Assembly (NCBI GenBank): GCA_001179505.1
Contig: CDMY01000541.1
Span: forward strand, 1 to 55,105
Length of the DNA: 55,105 nt
DNA from: Vitrella brassicaformis CCMP3155
Taxonomy: Eukaryota > Protista > Chromerida
Direction of reading: 5' to 3'
Positions 46,179 through 55,105 of the stretch are shown one piece after another. Position numbers and translations under genes: made by a program. Every line of letters begins with the position of its first letter. The stretch's first letter is position 1. The notes beneath the pieces were generated by a model. It made no database searches and had not been told where the DNA came from. It worked only from the letters and a program-made list of their open reading frames with translations.

Positions 46179-46680
46179 TATGATGAATGTCTGTATGTGC
46201 ACCCCTGCGTACACATGTCGACTTGGAGTGTGTACATGATGAATGTCTCTATGCTCATGCACGTCTCGACTTGGAGTGTGTGTATAAAATGAACGTCTGT
46301 GTGCGCACCTCTGCGCATGCACGTGTCGACTTGGAGTGTGTGTATGGAGTGTGTGTATATAATGAACGTCTGTGTGCGCACCCCTGCGCATGCATGTGTC
46401 GACTTGGAGTGTGTGTCTATAATGAACACGACACACACTCCAAGTCGACACGTGCATGCGGTTCATTATAGACACACACTCCAAGTCGACACGTGCATGC
46501 GCAGGGGTGCGCACACAGACGTTCGTCAGATACACACACTTCAAGTCGAGACGTGCATGCGCACACAGACATTCATCATGTACACACACTCCAAGTCGAC
46601 CTGTGCACGCAGGGGTACACACATAGACATTCATTAAATACATACACTCCAAGTCAACAAGTGCATGCGCAGAGGTGCGC
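46179..46680. repeat. Head-to-head (palindromic) array of the 60-bp unit
   Basis: Reverse units 46179-46427 and forward units 46428-46680. A perfect 30-bp inverted repeat lies at 46398-46427 / 46461-46490. Confidence 0.95.
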
Positions 46681-47715: not shown

Positions 47716-47869
47716 GTCGATTGCAAGCGCTCCTGTCATGCGCCTCATCTGTCTACTCACCTGTCTACCGTCCTCTTCCATTGCTGCTGATACAGATGTC
47801 ATTCACCAAGGTTGCCGAGCCGTGCGAGCTTTCTCTGGAGACGGAAAGTCGGTGGTCACACGCAGCTTC

Positions 47870-49467
47870 TTACCGGTCATCAGCAAGTTGCGCTGCCGGC
47901 ATTCTCCGCCTGACTACATTTGCAGCGCGACAGCTTGTGTCTATGTGTGTATGCGTCTGGCTGCGTGAGGCCGTGAGGCCGTGCCACCCCTCTCCGTGAC
48001 ACCCCTCTCTCTGACACTTGGAAGCCGTCTGACTGCTCCGCAAGTCGTCCAGCCGGCACTGCTGGCCTCACTACATTTGCAGCGAGGGTGTAAGGGCCTT
48101 GATAGGTCACCTGATTCAACGCTCAGCTTATTCACGCCCTCCAGGCCAGGTTGCTTGATCAATCGTCAATTCGGCCTCCAGGCGAAGTTCTTCCTGTTGA
48201 TACATTTGCGGGCTCAAAAAATTGGACCAATAGTCCAGACGGAGGCCTGTCACAGCATTGGTACCGAAAAACGACAACATTTGCGATGGCATTGCGCCCC
48301 ATGACAAGGAATAGACGGTCCCAGGGGGAAGAGCCATCGCGCATGCTCCCACATGTCTTCCAATGGGTGTCCTTGCCTGCGGATCTCCTGGAGATGAGCA
48401 AGGTGAAGCTCCGAGCCTGCCTGTGCTGTTTGCTTCTTTTTAACCCCCTGTCGTGGACGCCCCGCCCGCCGAAAGTAAGTTTACCAGGAGAGGCGGCCCG
48501 GATGTTTCCCAATGTGTTCCGATAAACGTGCTTGCCTTCTGATCTCCTGGAGATGAGCAGCGTCAAGCTCCGAGCCTGTCTGTGCTGTTTGCTCCTTTCT
48601 CAACCTCCTATAATAGACGTCCGGTGGTTTTGAAGGTAAGTTTTCCAGGAGCAAATCCCGTGTCCCCCGCAGCTTCTTGCCGCTCATCAGCAAGTTGTGC
48701 TGCCGGCATTTCTCCGCCTGACTACATTTACAGCGCGACAGCTTGTGTGTATCTGTGTATGCGTCTGGCTGCGTGATGCCGTGCCACCGCTCTCTCTGCC
48801 ACTTGCAGGCCGTGTGACTGCTCCGCAAGTCGTGCAGCCCGTACTTTTTTGGCCTCACTACATTTGCAGCGAGGGTGTAAGGCCTTGTTATGTCACCTGA
48901 TTCGACGCTCAGCTTATTCACGCCCTCCACGCCAGGTTCGTTGATCAATCGTCAATTCGGCCTCCAGGCCAAGTTCTTGCTGTTGATACATTTGCGGGCT
49001 GAAAAAAGTGCACCAATAGTCCAGACGGAGGCCTGTCACAGCATTGGTACCGAAAAATGACGACATCTGCGATGATATGGCGCCCTTCAGCAACATCTTT
49101 ACCATCAGGCGCGGCCAGGATGCTCCCAATTATATGTTGTTCCAATGAACCAATCTGTCTGCTGATTTCCCTTGATTGGGGACCATGGAACAACGCACCG
49201 CCGTGTACTGTTTGTTTGTTTTTACACCCCTCATGGTGGTAGCCCTGCGTGTTTGAGCGAGCTCAGATTGAAGCTTGGTACACTGTGCACAGCCATTACG
49301 CCCACCACAACGTAGATATCGTCCCGCCGGTCTGAAACCTGTCAACGCACGTGAGCCTTCCTCACCTCGATCGTGCGAATGTTGCAGCTGCCCCTCGTTC
49401 TCTGTTTGACGCTGATTGTCACGCCACAAGCCATGTCTGGCTCACAGCGTCCCCTTTCCGGCACGAA
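47870..49467. repeat. Hierarchical repeat block: ~800-bp tandem duplication (47870-48330 vs 48670-49100) with ~158-bp internal sub-repeats
   Basis: Near-identical blocks such as GCAGCTTCTT...CATCAGCAAGTTG and CAGCATTGGTACCGAAAAA. GATCTCCTGGAGATGAGCA...GCTCCGAGCCTG occurs at ~48381 and ~48541. Confidence 0.9.
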
Positions 49468-51838
49468 AAGAACCCGCGACACAGCACCCAAGCGTGGGAG
49501 GGATGTCGGGGAGTTTGACGACAGACGTCGCCGTCTGTCCGACGCTGGCCAGTCCGACGCCGATGCAGAGATCTGCAAGCAGGCGTTGAAGGATCCCTCG
49601 AAACTTGGCCTGCAAGACGTGCAACACGAGACGATCCAGTGGCTGGCGAAAGATAGCGGGCAGGGCTTAGTATTTGAGACCATCATCAACGAGATCCGCG
49701 AGTGCAACACGACCTGGACTGACCAAAGACAGCAGCGCAAAGAGGTACACACATGCATACATCACATACATCGGTGGCATGGCCTAGCCCGTCTCCGTGG
49801 CCTGGCCTCTTGTGATAATCTTCTTGGCGTGATTGCGTTCGCGGTGGGTTGGCTGTCTCGTGCACGCATACCTTTCTGCCGACTGCTACGCTGTGACAAC
49901 GATGTGGGGAACCATTTTGAGGGTAAATTTGAGCGTAAATGTGGGTGAGCATCACGCCCCTAACCACTGGCCCCTACTTGTGCGATTCAGCCAAGGGAGC
50001 TAATGCTTAACCAGTCCGTGGCGTTCGCAGCCCTGGCCAACGCAATGGACGAAATTGTCAACAAGCTGAAGAGCGACAACGCCACCGTGCCCGTGTTGGT
50101 GGCCGACATCGAAAACTCCACGATCAGCGCGTGCACGCCGAGGCAGCTGAACGACGGGAGCGGGAGAATGATCCGACCGGTCCATCTTCTGGAGATCCTC
50201 GAGGACCTGTCTTACGGCCTGTTCCCCGGGTTGCTGCATGACTCGCCCGTGCCATGGAAGTCCCTGACCAAGGAAAAGTTTGCCTGGGCATGCCTCGTAC
50301 GGATGTGGATATGGGTGGCACAGTCAGAGGGGGTCACAGAGAGATAAGCGAGTCACAGGGAAATGAGTCTTCACGCCGAGTCCTGTCTTGTCTTGTCATG
50401 TGATGTGATGTGATGTGATGTGTTGTGATGTGATGTGTTCTGATGGGTGTTGCAGGGCTCTCTACTGACCCCCAACCGCGAGAACTCGCAGTCATTCAAC
50501 GCCTTCATGTCGCTGGCCAAGGAAGTGAAGGCTCGCAGAAAAACGGCCGCCAAGGAGGGCAATCATGCGTCGATGCCCAAGAATGATATCGCGGCGTGCA
50601 TCGAAATTGTGGGCTCTACATGAGACACAGTCGATCACAGATTTTGCACACAGCAGACCTTCCCATTTCTTCTTGTTTTTCCCTCTTTTTCACTGCATGG
50701 CACCACGGTCAGGCCGGGCAACAGAACGTGACAGCGGGCTTTTTGCAGTACCTCTTCTCTCCGCCTCAGCAGACAAACAACACGCGTGGCGCAAAAAAAA
50801 TGACCGCCTCCTACAACATCGCCGTCGCCCAGAAAAAGGACGTCACACCCCCGGTCGTCGACATAGTGTGGAACGACGTCAGTCAGCTGGTCGCACAGAA
50901 CAAACCGCTGCCATCCATCGTTCAGCTCCTGAAGACTCTGCCGGGCTGGGGTCTCAAGGTGCCGTCCATGATGGTGCAGGTCAGGTCAGTCAATCTGTGA
51001 TCACACGCGGGTCACTCGAATGAGTCGAGTGGGAGAGACACGAGCGGGAGAGACAGAGACACAGCCAAGACTGTGTGACAGACCGCTCTCTTTCCGTGTC
51101 TGTGTGTGTGTGTATGGCCTGTATGTGCTTGGTGTCTCTCTGTGTCTTTCTGCACAGTTGTTTCTATACTTTCTCGCGTACTTGAAACCCTCTGCAGAAG
51201 AACTTGGAGACGTTCCAGAAGAGGCCATGATCAAGCCACCAGCATGGGTTGACAGAAACCTGCTTAAGATCACGGGGCACCTGACGGGCGATTTCGATAA
51301 CAACGCCGAGCGTGTCTCCAGGAATATGAGCGAGTAAGAAACTAAATGTAGCGCCATCTTCGCTAGCGTTGCCTCTCGCGTCGCCCCTTTATAGTTTTCA
51401 TGTCTCTCTGTCTGTCTTGTCTTGTCTTGTCTGTCTTCGTTTGGGTACGTTTGCGTATTTAGGACTCTGAAGGGTCCGGACGCGAGAGAGACATACGACC
51501 GTTCGACACGCAACGGGACGACCAAGACGTGGATTCGGCAGAACCTCTGCGTCAAAGGCCTGTGCGAGTCTTGTCCGCTGGGCGTGTCCTTCATGTCTTT
51601 CTACCGACTGAATGACGGCCTGTCCGTGACGGACCTCGACAATGTCCATGACCTCGAGGAGGTGTGCAATCCGGTGACGAGAATCTGTGCCAAGCCTGTT
51701 CTCCATCACAAATTCGCCAACAACAAGAAAGGCAGGAAGAAGAAAGCGAAGCGGGGAGATGAGGACGAGGATGAGAACGAGGATGAGGACGGACAAGGAA
51801 AGGAAAAGGAGGAGGCACTCAGACGGCGGGGGACATAG
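49433..51838 (+). CDS. HhH-GPD superfamily DNA glycosylase-like protein (~529 aa, 6 exons)
   Basis: Phase-consistent exons 49433-49744, 49991-50296, 50456-50608, 50713-50979, 51158-51333 and 51463-51838 total 1590 nt with no internal stop. HhH motif LLKTLPGWGLK, downstream PPAWVD, Cys cluster CVKGLCESCPL and a basic/acidic tail. Confidence 0.7.
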
Positions 51839-52629
51839 AGTGAAATGTCCTACCCAACGAAGCGACCGATTTGGGCCGATTCTTCCCTTCTGACCGACCA
51901 TCCTCATGAAAGCCTCCACCGAACCGACACGGCTTATTGCGGTCATCCTCCCCTATAACCGCACCGAAAACCGACACCGAATGGTTGAATGATGTGTTTT
52001 TCTGACTGTTTCAGGCTACCTGCTGGCTGGATTAAAAGAAAAATCCCCATTTCCGCCACGCAGTAATCATAAATGGCGTCTCTTGACTGAAAATGTCTCT
52101 TTTCTGTCTGTTTTCCAAGTAAATCCTCTCAGATCCTACCTGATGAGAGCACCGAAACCGACAGGTTTTCGGAGAGAGGGGGGAGGACAGGTAAAAACCG
52201 ACCGACCGGGAGGGGTTGATAGCGTGTCCTAGGATACCTTGTCGGTTTTCCCTTCATGTCCCCCGCCGTGCACTCAGCTCGCCCCCAGCCCCGAAAAGAA
52301 GGAAAAGGTGACTGTACTTTGCTGGCTGAATTTTGCTTCTGACCGAATTTTACCCCCGAAAGAAGCAAAATTAAGTGATACGCAGGAGGGCGGAACAAAA
52401 ATACGTGAGTCACGTATGTTGTGAACGAATGGACAGATCGACGGATAGGTGAATTTTTGACTGTACCCTTTTAAAACGCCACTGACACGGTCCATGCAAA
52501 CATCGGAATATCTTTCTTCCGAATATCTTTCTCGCTATCAGTCTGACTTTGTCGCCCGTATAAATTTACCAGGCTGACGCCCTGCGGATGAAGAGCGTGA
52601 AGCTGCGCGCCTCCTCTCTATTGCCCTCG

Positions 52630-53620
52630 GCTGACTCCTCCTGTGTCTGCCTGGCAGGTGTGTTGATGATTCGTTGAGCCGCATTGCCGCTCTCCCTGTT
52701 GCCAGGTGAGCCGATGCACGTCATGAACATGTTGACATCGCAGATCTACTCGTCCTCGTGCCGGAAAGGGGACGCTGTGAGCCAGACATGGCTTGTGGCG
52801 TGACAATCAGCGTCAAACAGAGAACGAGGGGCAGCTGCAACATTCGCACGATCGAGGTGAGGAAGGCTCACGTGCGTTGACAGGTTTCAGACCGGCGGGA
52901 CGATATCTACGTTGTGGGGGCGTAACGGCTGTGCACAGTGTACCAAGCTTCAATCTGAGCTCGCTCAAACACGCAGGGCTACCACCATGAAGGTGTAAAA
53001 ACAAACAAACAGCACACGGCGGTGCGTTGTTCCATGGTCCCCAATCAAGGGAAATCTGCAGACAGATTGATTCATTGGAACAACATGTAATTGGGAGCAT
53101 CCTGGCCGCGCCTCATGGTAAAGATGTTGTTGAGGGGCGCCATATCATCGCAGATGTCGTCATTTTTCGGTACCAATGCTGTGACAGGCCTCCGTCTGGA
53201 CTATTGGTGCAGTTTTTTCAGCCCGCAAATGTATCAACAGCAAGAACTTCGCCTGGTGGCCGAATTGACGATTGATCAACGAACCTGGCGTGGAGGGCGT
53301 GAATAAGCTGAGCGTCGAATCAGGTGACATAACAAGGCCCTTACGCCCTCGCTGCAAATGTAGTGAGGCCAAAAGTGCCGTGAGGTGATCGCCGTCAAGT
53401 CACGCAGGATTCCGGCACACAGATCCACTCGTCTGAGTGGATCGTCTGAGTGTCTGCCTCACAGGCGTGCTACTGTTTCGTGTTGCAGCCTTCCCTGCTG
53501 CACGGTGAGCTGATGGTGGCCGTCATGCAGGATTCCGGCACACAGATCTACTCGTCTGAGCGCTCCTGTGTGTGTCTGCCTGGCAGGTGTGTTGGTGTTT
53601 CGTTGAGCCGCATCGCCACG
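52630..53620. repeat. ~120-bp repeat family (copies at ~52630-52755, 53400-53520, 53525-53620) interrupted by the inverted 620-bp module
   Basis: Shared blocks TGTCTGCCTGGCAGGTGTGTTG, CAGATCTACTCGTC and CAGGATTCCGGCACACAGATC. Confidence 0.8.
52756..53374 (-). repeat. ~620-bp inverted copy of 48847-49467 (upstream region and first ~11 codons of the glycosylase-like gene)
   Basis: Reverse-complement match from TTTTGGCCTCACTAC to CCGGCACGA with only scattered substitutions. Confidence 0.95.
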
Positions 53621-53823
53621 CACTCCAAGAACTATGACGATAGATGCACTTGCAGTTCACTCATGTACACGCACAAAGACACAAACGCAAGGACAAGCAC
53701 ATGAAAGTGTTCATGTAGCTTGGCGTGTGATTGATACACACATACAGACAAACAGACAACCGCCAGATAAAAACGTGCTATAGCATATCTCACGTTCCAC
53801 TCATATCATATCTCACATTCCAC

Positions 53824-55105
53824 TCACTCTTCGGACGCCCCCACGTCCACCCGCTTCGGCTCGACACACTCCACACCAGTCAGACTGTGACACCACTCCG
53901 GCTGCTCCTCCCTGAACCTCTCGATCAGCTCGTTCATCCGCAGCAGTATCTCATCAATCCCCGACACCCCTCGCAAAGGGCGCACGCGAGCCATCTTCAC
54001 CCAGTCCCACCTGCGCTCGAAGGCCTCGAACACTCTCCTGACCCGCGGGTCCGTCCCTGGCCCACCAAAATTGGCCACATACCCAATCAGATACTACGGC
54101 CGCAGATGGATTCGCTGCGTAAATGAAGGGCCCCGGCCGCTGTTGTGCTCAGCCAGCCGGTCGCGGAGGCGGGCTGTGGACCCGATATAGAACTCCGACG
54201 GGTCTCGCGTACTGCCCAGAGCGTACGTGTAGCCGACGTTGTCATTGGGGATGTCTATGGTCTTGCGGATGAACGGATAGTGGCTGTAGTCCACTACCGG
54301 GACCCTCGCACTCGTGACCCCTGCCCGGGTCGATGTGCAGTCCAGCCGCCTGACCTTCTCAATGCAGTGCTCCAGCCAGGCCGACCGCTGACGCATCAGC
54401 AGCTCCAGACAGCGCCTCACTTCCTCTCGCGTGTTGCGAAAATAGATGCCGTTGAGCTGGCGGGTGCATGACAGCAGCACCACCAGCATCGCTTTCTCCC
54501 ATACATGATACGCAGAGCCCGCCAGGTCAGCGGGGGACAGGATACGGGTCCCCATGACGTCGAACGTGTCCCCGATGGCCTTGTGGACGGTCAACGCGCT
54601 GTGGTGGACGAGAGGGAATATGTTACGGCGCCTCATGGTCATTCGCGAATCGAGAACGTGCGGAGACGTGTCGATGCGGTCACGCGAATGAGGGGCCACT
54701 GCTGGATGACGGCTGACGTCGCGGCCTGAAGCTGGCCGATGTCAACATCCAGAGGTGCCACTCGCACGGCAATGTACGGGCTCTGCGGATCCGCACAGTG
54801 GGACGCGTCGCCGACAAAGCACAAGCGCCCATTGGAGATGCCTCGGTCGTTGAGGTTGCTGCTGAACCGCATGCACGCGCCGTCCCACACCGTGAGCTGA
54901 TCGGGCTCACTGACCTTCTTCGCAATGCGCTGGACCAACCGTCGATTGCGCGTCGGCTGCCACCTACATAACACCACCATCACACCAACAAAACCATGGT
55001 CACAGACACACAGCGGCATCGACATCATTCAGGCACAAACACAAACACATACCTGCCCGGCATGTTGAATGTCTCATCCACAGCGTGCACGGTGTGCATT
55101 GTGAC
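53824..55105 (-). mobile_element. 3' part of a divergent Helitron-like ORF: PIF1 helicase C-terminus fused to a GIY-YIG endonuclease (defective; runs off the window end)
   Basis: Helicase motifs NLNDRGISNG, IFPL...ALTVHKAIGDT and VVLLSCT. In the same frame GYTYAL...FYIGST...RLAEHNSGRG...LRP*YLIGYVANF...FERRW. One intron (~54963-55052), a frameshift near 54.65 kb and an in-frame TAG at 54094-54096. Confidence 0.8.

Follow-up and report, generated by a model that had tools for sequence, protein, structure and literature searches.

The gene at this locus raises two questions: whether it encodes a DNA glycosylase of the HhH-GPD type, and whether the long inverted repeat that encloses it marks the ends of a mobile element. 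The window that we analysed is a stretch of 55,105 nucleotides from Vitrella brassicaformis CCMP3155 (contig CDMY01000541.1, here C541). The initial annotation, made from the letters of the window, had leaned towards yes on both and proposed a mobile cassette carrying a base-excision enzyme. The features on which our answer is based are collected in Table 1.

Table 1. Features in and around the gene, in positions of the 55,105-nucleotide window.
Feature	Position	Strand	Description
Upstream degenerate tandem copy of the promoter-proximal module	47855–48660	+	~800-bp period; direct repeats D1, D8, D10, D11
Left arm	48846–49466	+	upstream region, presumed 5′ UTR, ATG at 49433, 11 codons
Outer ~140 bp of the left arm	48938–49075	−	decayed copy of a dispersed exon-like repeat
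Six-exon gene	49433–51838	+	open frames without stops; GT-AG at all introns
Exon E1	49433–49744	+	frame and splice sites
Exon E2	49991–50296	+	frame and splice sites
Exon E3	50456–50608	+	frame and splice sites
Exon E4	50749 (more likely 50713)–50979	+	frame and splice sites
Helix and LPGWGLK hairpin, end of E4	50929–50979	+	aligned to the HhH of Nth/MutY; Lys on the Nth catalytic Lys
Exon E5	51158–51333	+	frame and splice sites
Two candidate catalytic-Asp motifs, E5	51239–51331	+	WVD(R/T)N and FDNNAERVSR
Exon E6	51463–51838	+	frame and splice sites
Cys loop C-x4-C-x2-C-P-L, E6	51542–51580	+	aligned to the Nth/MutY iron-sulfur loop; three Cys
Dispersed repeat immediately past the stop codon	51841–52270		copies on C811 (86%), C757 (78%) and C283
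Satellite units, ~122 bp (D6)	52626–52755		abut the inner end of the right arm
Right arm	52756–53375	−	inverted copy of the left arm: promoter, ATG, 11 codons, then a 10-codon dead end
Satellite, ~122 bp, outer side of the right arm	53376–53640		as on the inner side

The clean six-exon reading frame that had been described was recovered, with one probable change. E4 more likely starts at 50713 than at 50749, because the 12 extra codons are kept in the paralogs and are used by the GenBank model of a sister copy on a 4.1-kb contig, C19. The predicted protein would be 529 residues long with this start and 517 residues with the other. GenBank models of the C19 copy also back the E3–E4 and E5–E6 splices. 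Its model begins at a methionine within E2 and not in E1, and E1 is here a predicted coding exon. Both the N- and the C-terminal tail of the protein are basic and resemble nuclear localisation signals.

By searching the genome we found that the window holds the only intact full-length member of the family, all other members being older and decayed, or broken. The description of the gene as standing among pseudogenes is therefore apt: the C19 sister and most of eight older paralog loci are either fragmentary or disrupted by stops or frameshifts, and at the E4/E5 boundary every paralog copy has either a retained intron or a stop. C19 is collinear with the window and, leaving indels aside, ~98% identical to it; in C19, E2 has lost 7 bp, E3 is lengthened by an insertion of 20 bp, and E6 contains a TGA. 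C19 may be an allele that stayed uncollapsed in the assembly, and not a second locus. The eight older loci have the gene body alone in common with the window and lack the arms. Those on C831, C308, C602, C264, C266 and C77 share exons only, and no repeat, flank or partner gene is held in common with the window, the flank comparison having covered the first halves of six paralog neighbourhoods. The dN/dS ratio was 0.31–0.51 against the old paralogs and 0.77 against C19. The former values indicate that this has been a real coding family, and purifying selection acted during its history.

The ~620-bp inverted repeats reported around the gene were confirmed, as two arms of 621 and 619 bp that are 97.4% identical, a likeness beyond anything that chance produces. 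Both arms end on their inner side 34 nt inside the reading frame, that is, with the ATG and 11 codons. The repeat does then contain the start of the gene, as had been noted, this start being that of the predicted E1, and the right arm is indeed an inverted copy of the entire upstream region that points back to the 3′ end of the gene. On one side the left arm passes directly into the gene; on the other it runs into a local tandem (direct) duplication of ~800 bp; within the upstream tandem copy, positions 48063–48299 are a 92%-identical copy of the outer part of the arm. The right arm replaces part of one unit of the ~122-bp satellite, which flanks it on both sides and forms arrays on more than 20 contigs genome-wide. 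C541 and C19 were the only sites in the genome at which the complete arm, or its inner 350 bp, was found. C19 is the sole other copy with the inverted repeat; its right arm is reduced to 190 bp and has the same inner junction as in C541.

We read the inverted repeat as the gene's own promoter and predicted start, copied locally and flipped, and not as the ends of a transposon. The mobile cassette of the initial annotation, whether MULE-like or other, would have a base-excision enzyme as cargo and the arms as terminal inverted repeats (TIRs) with convergent promoters. As in MULE/Mutator-like and foldback transposons, inverted repeats of several hundred base pairs, here nearly identical, enclose a gene; the family has several copies, most of them decayed, as is often true of selfish elements; and on C19 there is another copy in which the inner junction is the same. 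We nonetheless consider a mobile cassette most improbable. No convincing target-site duplication flanks the arms over 288 boundary offsets: the best direct repeat of the flanks, the 4-bp CCGT, fits one placement of the boundaries, but it falls within the extended homology of the arms, and about one such match is expected by chance. No transposase-like open reading frame was found between or beside the arms. Unlike in TIR transposons, moreover, the arms end within other repeats and not at the ends of inserted DNA, since the outer flank of the left arm runs on into the tandem duplicate and is thus not an element end, while the right arm takes the place of satellite sequence. There is also no family of copies with common termini: among the other genomic copies C19 alone has the repeat, and the older paralogs have neither arms, flanks nor partner gene in common. 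A functional role for the repeat, in which the promoter of the right arm drives antisense RNA (dsRNA/siRNA self-regulation) or the arms serve as a flip-flop switch, would seem improbable too. The right arm does carry a 97% copy of the full upstream region directed into the 3′ end of the gene, and the arms appear to have been kept similar through conversion, but the C19 right arm is down to its 190 bp and the older paralogs all do without the repeat. An on/off switch is impossible from the geometry of the arms, because flipping rebuilds an identical gene either way; antisense self-regulation, and any link to breakpoints, are speculation.

Three further proposals for the repeat and its surroundings were rejected. 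A staggered-break inversion does not agree with the junctions, both of those of the left arm looking ancestral and both of those of the right arm new. A CACTA-type end at CACTAC fails as the arm homology extends past it and the 3-bp duplication is absent. Linkage with the neighbouring PIF1/GIY-YIG pseudogene was dismissed, the two flanks being dissimilar and the paralog loci having no common neighbour.

Returning to a flipped copy of the promoter and start, it would seem likely that the 621-bp promoter and 5′ end were copied and inserted in reverse in the satellite array ~0.9 kb downstream, probably during break repair or template switching. This event would be older than the split between C541 and C19, and the arms may since have been kept alike by gene conversion. 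Within each locus the arms agree with one another, with GCCACA in both arms of C541 and GTTACG in both arms of C19. As the two arms of a locus carry a common three-base change, exchange between them through gene conversion is suggested, on the strength of this one clustered change. If the arms recombined, the gene body would be flipped but would still have a promoter and start attached in either state. Inverted duplications that arise from break repair or template switching and whose arms are homogenised by conversion are known, for instance, from the palindromes of sex chromosomes. The Vitrella locus is like these in having two long inverted arms of high similarity that enclose a unique spacer, here of 3.3 kb, no target-site duplications, arms with locus-specific changes, and one ancestral copy with the other inserted in repetitive DNA. 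It differs in that the duplicated piece is just 621 bp and comprises precisely the promoter and the first 34 coding bases, so that the gene would be intact in either orientation of the spacer.

As to whether the protein belongs to the HhH-GPD superfamily, none of the searches reached an accepted significance threshold. The motifs lie on three separate exons, and the model searches were run on exons and fragments. Pfam gave no match for any exon or for the two fragments of the C19 copy recorded in GenBank. A six-frame scan of the genome with PF00730 found nine other places on eight contigs and did not match this gene or its paralogs. Searches of the PDB with phmmer and with profiles (exons, exon-family profiles and P0006, a naturally spliced E5–E6 fragment) returned nothing relevant, the sole matches being spurious, summed matches of the Cys stretch to designer PPR repeats. 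In hmmsearch with an Nth/MutY model the exons did not rise above the background of the window, and the ESM Atlas held no usable match to E4 or E6. AlphaFold gave three helices followed by a hairpin for E4 alone (pLDDT 56.7); this model and that of P0006 (pLDDT 38.9) were too uncertain for a fold search.

A signal did appear when the exon-family profiles were compared, exon by exon, with 27 bacterial Nth/MutY proteins using hhalign. E4, E5 and E6 gave three collinear matches, on template columns 121–130, 140–157 and 206–214 respectively. Column shuffles reached the observed score in 0 of 150 cases for E4, 6 of 150 for E5 and 1 of 150 for E6, and against a control of 380 real ORF pieces the three exons fell within the top ~1.6%, ~4% and ~0.3%; the hhalign probabilities were 2–15% and all scores were weak. 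The E4 hairpin, LKTLPGWGLK, scored 23.7, and 17.9 as a single sequence, a value reached by 6 of the 380 ORF pieces. Its motif is conserved in eight paralog pieces. All of this is evidence at the level of the motif only. The helix and hairpin of E4 also match the HhH of C503, one of Vitrella's own HhH-GPD loci as located by the PF00730 scan, and the best of the weak BLAST matches to these loci fall on strings that resemble the HhH, VDT and CxxCPL.

The details of the motifs are as first described, with LPGWGLK, a VD 39 residues past its Lys, and C-x4-C-x2-C-P-L all present. The catalytic Asp of HhH-GPD enzymes usually lies ~18–20 residues past the hairpin, after a Gly/Pro-rich stretch. Here two candidates were found: WVD(R/T)N, 39 residues past the Lys and kept in four of five paralogs, and FDNNAERVSR, 54 residues past it, which is the choice of hhalign and aligns to VDGNVxRV. 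The distance from Lys to Asp is thus two to three times the usual one, and the position of the Asp is ambiguous. Downstream, C-x4-C-x2-C is conserved in the window, C19 and C308; no fourth Cys, as in the C-x6-C-x2-C-x5-C iron-sulfur loop of Nth/MutY, is conserved. In P0006 the region from the Asp motif through the Cys loop forms a single hhalign block of 67 columns. The glycosylase reading of the initial annotation remains the best guess, in that hairpin, Lys, Asp motif and Cys loop align in the Nth/MutY order, but it reaches significance in no standard test.

The blank standard searches, the HMMER scores at background and hhalign probabilities of at most 15% are what would be expected of a lineage-specific nuclear protein, an orphan whose LPGxGxK, VDxN and CxxCPL would be short motifs that arose by chance. 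A Lys-to-Asp distance of 39 or 54 residues in place of 18–19, a loop of three Cys and the spurious repeated PPR matches of the Cys stretch agree with this also. We take such an orphan to be a possible but rather unlikely identity for the protein. Three independent exons each fall on the template motif predicted for them, in the correct order and each within the top 0.3–4% of the real-ORF controls; the spacing from Asp motif to Cys loop is accommodated in one alignment; and both the Lys and the Asp of WVD are conserved across the paralogs.

No relatives were found outside Vitrella by profile and word searches. The E4 family profile, run against 1.84 billion representative proteins, matched Vitrella fragments only, apart from a repetitive false match, P0003; word searches with P0001 and E6 returned products of C19 only; and the E5 profile found no relatives among viral and JGI metagenome contigs. 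A literature search on Vitrella and glycosylase yielded nothing relevant.

Compared with the Nth/MutY branch (PF00730), the Vitrella protein is similar in having a helix that leads into an LPGxGxK hairpin whose Lys occupies the lyase position of Nth, then D-x-N-x-x-(R/K)-(V/I) and a C-terminal CxxCPL loop, in the same order and with roughly the same spacing. It differs in showing no significant match to any model or structure, in its 20–35 extra residues between hairpin and Asp, and in its C-x4-C-x2-C loop, where the missing fourth Cys makes an iron-sulfur cluster doubtful. In addition, E2 forms an extra N-terminal region that is conserved, the tails are charged, and the family is confined to Vitrella, with most copies dead. 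Membership of the HhH-GPD superfamily is, on these comparisons, plausible but unproven.

Taking gene and repeat together, the account that we favour, with modest confidence, joins a surviving gene, a divergent enzyme and a flipped promoter. The gene in the window would be the single intact copy of an intron-bearing family specific to Vitrella brassicaformis, which probably spread through duplication at the DNA level and then mostly decayed. Its protein of ~520 residues would most likely be a very divergent HhH-GPD offshoot of the Nth/MutY type, which may keep the helix-hairpin-helix with a lyase-type Lys and a downstream Asp motif, with an insert of 20–35 residues between the two and the Cys loop reduced to three Cys. 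We infer for it the activity of a nuclear, DNA-binding base-excision or AP-lyase-like enzyme. It is very doubtful that we are seeing, more boldly, a chromerid-specific, fast-evolving branch of HhH-GPD glycosylases/lyases with a selfish or arms-race-like history of repeated duplication and decay, whose one survivor sits in a cassette that can flip unbroken between its inverted promoter copies and could supply antisense RNA, tying a base-excision enzyme to repeat-rich, rearranging DNA.

As it stands, the locus offers a plausible but unproven annotation and an ordinary structural rearrangement, and no new mobile element. If fold and activity were both confirmed, the gene would encode a glycosylase/lyase that is unusually divergent and restricted to one lineage, in a free-living alga related to the apicomplexan parasites. 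With its long insert and its reduced Cys loop, the enzyme would then be a useful outlier for studying what the HhH-GPD scaffold tolerates and which base is removed. The repeat itself is a clean, datable case of a module of promoter plus start being copied and flipped in the Vitrella genome.

The 621- and 619-bp arms of the inverted repeat that brackets the gene are 97.4% identical, confirming the initial annotation's observation that repeats of ~620 bp include the predicted start of the gene. Each arm contains the upstream region, the ATG (49433 in the left arm) and 11 codons, and both have sharp inner ends 34 nt past the ATG. The left arm continues uninterrupted into the gene; the right arm, beyond its 11 codons, runs into a 10-codon dead end. 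In a search of the 72.7-Mb, 1064-contig assembly, where the window is the entire 55,105-bp contig C541, the inner 350 bp of the arm was found only here and on C19, a contig carrying a broken sister copy of the gene.

Coordinates of the arms, predicted exons (E1-E6) and repeats
Feature	Position	Strand	Basis
Left arm	48846-49466	+	Repeat search and three-way alignment
Right arm	52756-53375	Inverted copy	Repeat search and three-way alignment
E1	49433-49744	+	Open frame alone
E2	49991-50296	+	Frame and splice sites
E3	50456-50608	+	Frame and splice sites
E4	50749-50979 (probable start 50713)	+	Frame and splice sites
E5	51158-51333, phase 2	+	Frame and splice sites
E6	51463-51838	+	Frame and splice sites
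~122-bp satellite	52626-52755, 53376-53640		
Dispersed exon-like piece	48938-49075, 48155-48288, 53145-53261; also L006:1489-1659		

The proposal that these repeats delimit a mobile cassette is not supported. There is no transposase-like ORF between or beside the arms, and a scan for target-site duplications over 288 boundary offsets gave flank repeats of at most 4 bp, equal to chance expectation. The left arm's flank (48662-48845) and the first ~250 bp of the arm are duplicated at 47855-48307 with a period of ~800 bp, and therefore no inserted element ends where this arm does. Both junctions of the right arm are new and lie within the ~122-bp satellite, part of one unit of which the arm has replaced; the satellite to its left differs too much from that to its right for the pair to be a target-site duplication. 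Beyond the gene body, no arms, flanks or partner gene are common to the window and the loci of the paralogs. Together the features of the arms fit an event that copied the promoter and 5′ segment into the satellite in reverse orientation, with break repair or template switching as its probable cause. The inner junction on C19 is identical, so the duplication predates the split between the two copies. A single clustered change, GCCACA in both arms here and GTTACG in both arms on C19, suggests that the two arms of a locus have exchanged sequence by gene conversion. With the arms so arranged, a crossover between them would flip the 3.3-kb spacer, and the gene body would remain joined to a promoter and start.

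Three-frame translation gave a clean six-exon GT-AG model of 1554 nt (517 residues) with E4 taken from 50749. Since the preceding 12 codons, from 50713, are kept in the paralogs and included in the GenBank model of the C19 copy, E4 probably starts there, giving a 529-residue protein. That GenBank model begins in E2. The E5-E6 splice is confirmed by P0006, the GenBank fragment of the C19 copy.

Exon-by-exon searches with the predicted spliced model gave no Pfam match, the PDB and ESM Atlas searches were blank, and plain HMMER did not raise the exons above background. Across the genome, PF00730 was found at nine other places on eight contigs, the gene family not among them. When exon-family profiles were compared by hhalign with an alignment of 27 bacterial Nth and MutY proteins, LKTLPGWGLK of E4 fell on the hairpin (columns 121-130; score 23.7) with its lysine on the Nth lysine, GDFDNNAERVSR of E5 on VDGNVxRV (columns 140-157; 16.8) and KGLCESCPL of E6 on the Cys loop (columns 206-214; 20.8). 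The observed scores were reached by 0, 6 and 1 of 150 column shuffles, respectively, and, scored as single sequences alongside 380 real ORF pieces from the window, the exons came in approximately the top 1.6%, 4% and 0.3%. The three matches are collinear, and the naturally spliced P0006 gives a single alignment of 67 columns that runs from the Asp motif through to the Cys loop. Weak BLAST matches to Vitrella's own PF00730-hit loci involve the same kinds of motif strings. The candidate aspartate is ambiguous, either in WVD(R/T)N at +39, kept in four of five paralogs, or in FDNN at +54; the Cys loop has three cysteines rather than four, and AlphaFold on single pieces was uninformative. The glycosylase-like reading is plausible but unproven, and the hhalign probabilities, at only 2-15%, count against it; on balance we favour true HhH-GPD ancestry, with appreciable doubt.

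Genome searches with DNA and with each exon identified one near copy, on the 4139-bp C19, and older, partial copies on C831, C308, C602 (two), C264 (two), C266 and C77, most with stops or missing exons. The E4/E5 and E5/E6 intron positions, those examined, are retained in the paralogs, which are therefore DNA-level duplicates and not retrocopies. C19 is collinear with 49009-52944 and, indels aside, ~98% identical to it. Its E2 lacks 7 bp, its E3 has an extra 20 bp and its E6 contains a TGA, and its exons are conserved no better than its introns. GenBank lists it as two 'uncharacterized' proteins, CEL91740.1 (240 residues, E2-E4 with out-of-frame stretches) and the 108-residue E5-E6 fragment. 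Nothing in the window matches the initial 146 bp of C19, so the contig terminates at a junction within the right arm. For the window copy, dN/dS is 0.31-0.51 against the old paralogs and 0.77 against C19. Purifying selection acted on the family through most of its history, and the C19 copy is drifting. Database searches found no relatives outside Vitrella. P0004, a genomic-style fragment with intron read-through from a 1013-bp JGI/IMG metagenome contig, shares a 90%-identity cluster with the GenBank protein of the C264 paralog, and so represents Vitrella-like DNA in a public environmental data set.

The satellite forms tandem arrays on >20 contigs (e.g. C647, C430, C761 and C200), its units holding splice-like cag|gtgag strings. 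About 140 bp of the left arm is a decayed, opposite-strand copy of a dispersed exon-like piece encoding a conserved ~57-residue peptide (...TNAFTGLHLDY...SPQLY...). The piece has at least 20 genomic copies, some within long open frames (e.g. 622 residues on C725), and may belong to an uncharacterised transposon or repeated gene. Directly 3′ of the gene's stop codon is a dispersed repeat (51841-52270) with copies on C811 (86%), C757 (78%) and C283 (89%, partial), and at 46180-46680 units of 50-73 bp form a dense palindromic array, in which many inverted repeats (81-96% complementary) are nested. An ORF at 54094-54699 (-) carries a C-terminal GIY-YIG nuclease domain (Pfam E 6e-5). Its frame stops partway through the domain, of which it matches profile positions 2-40 of 78, so that the gene looks broken. 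The right flank here showed no resemblance to other parts of the window.

The locus holds an orphan gene, probably a very divergent HhH-GPD member, and beside it lies an inverted duplicate, of local origin, of the gene's putative promoter.
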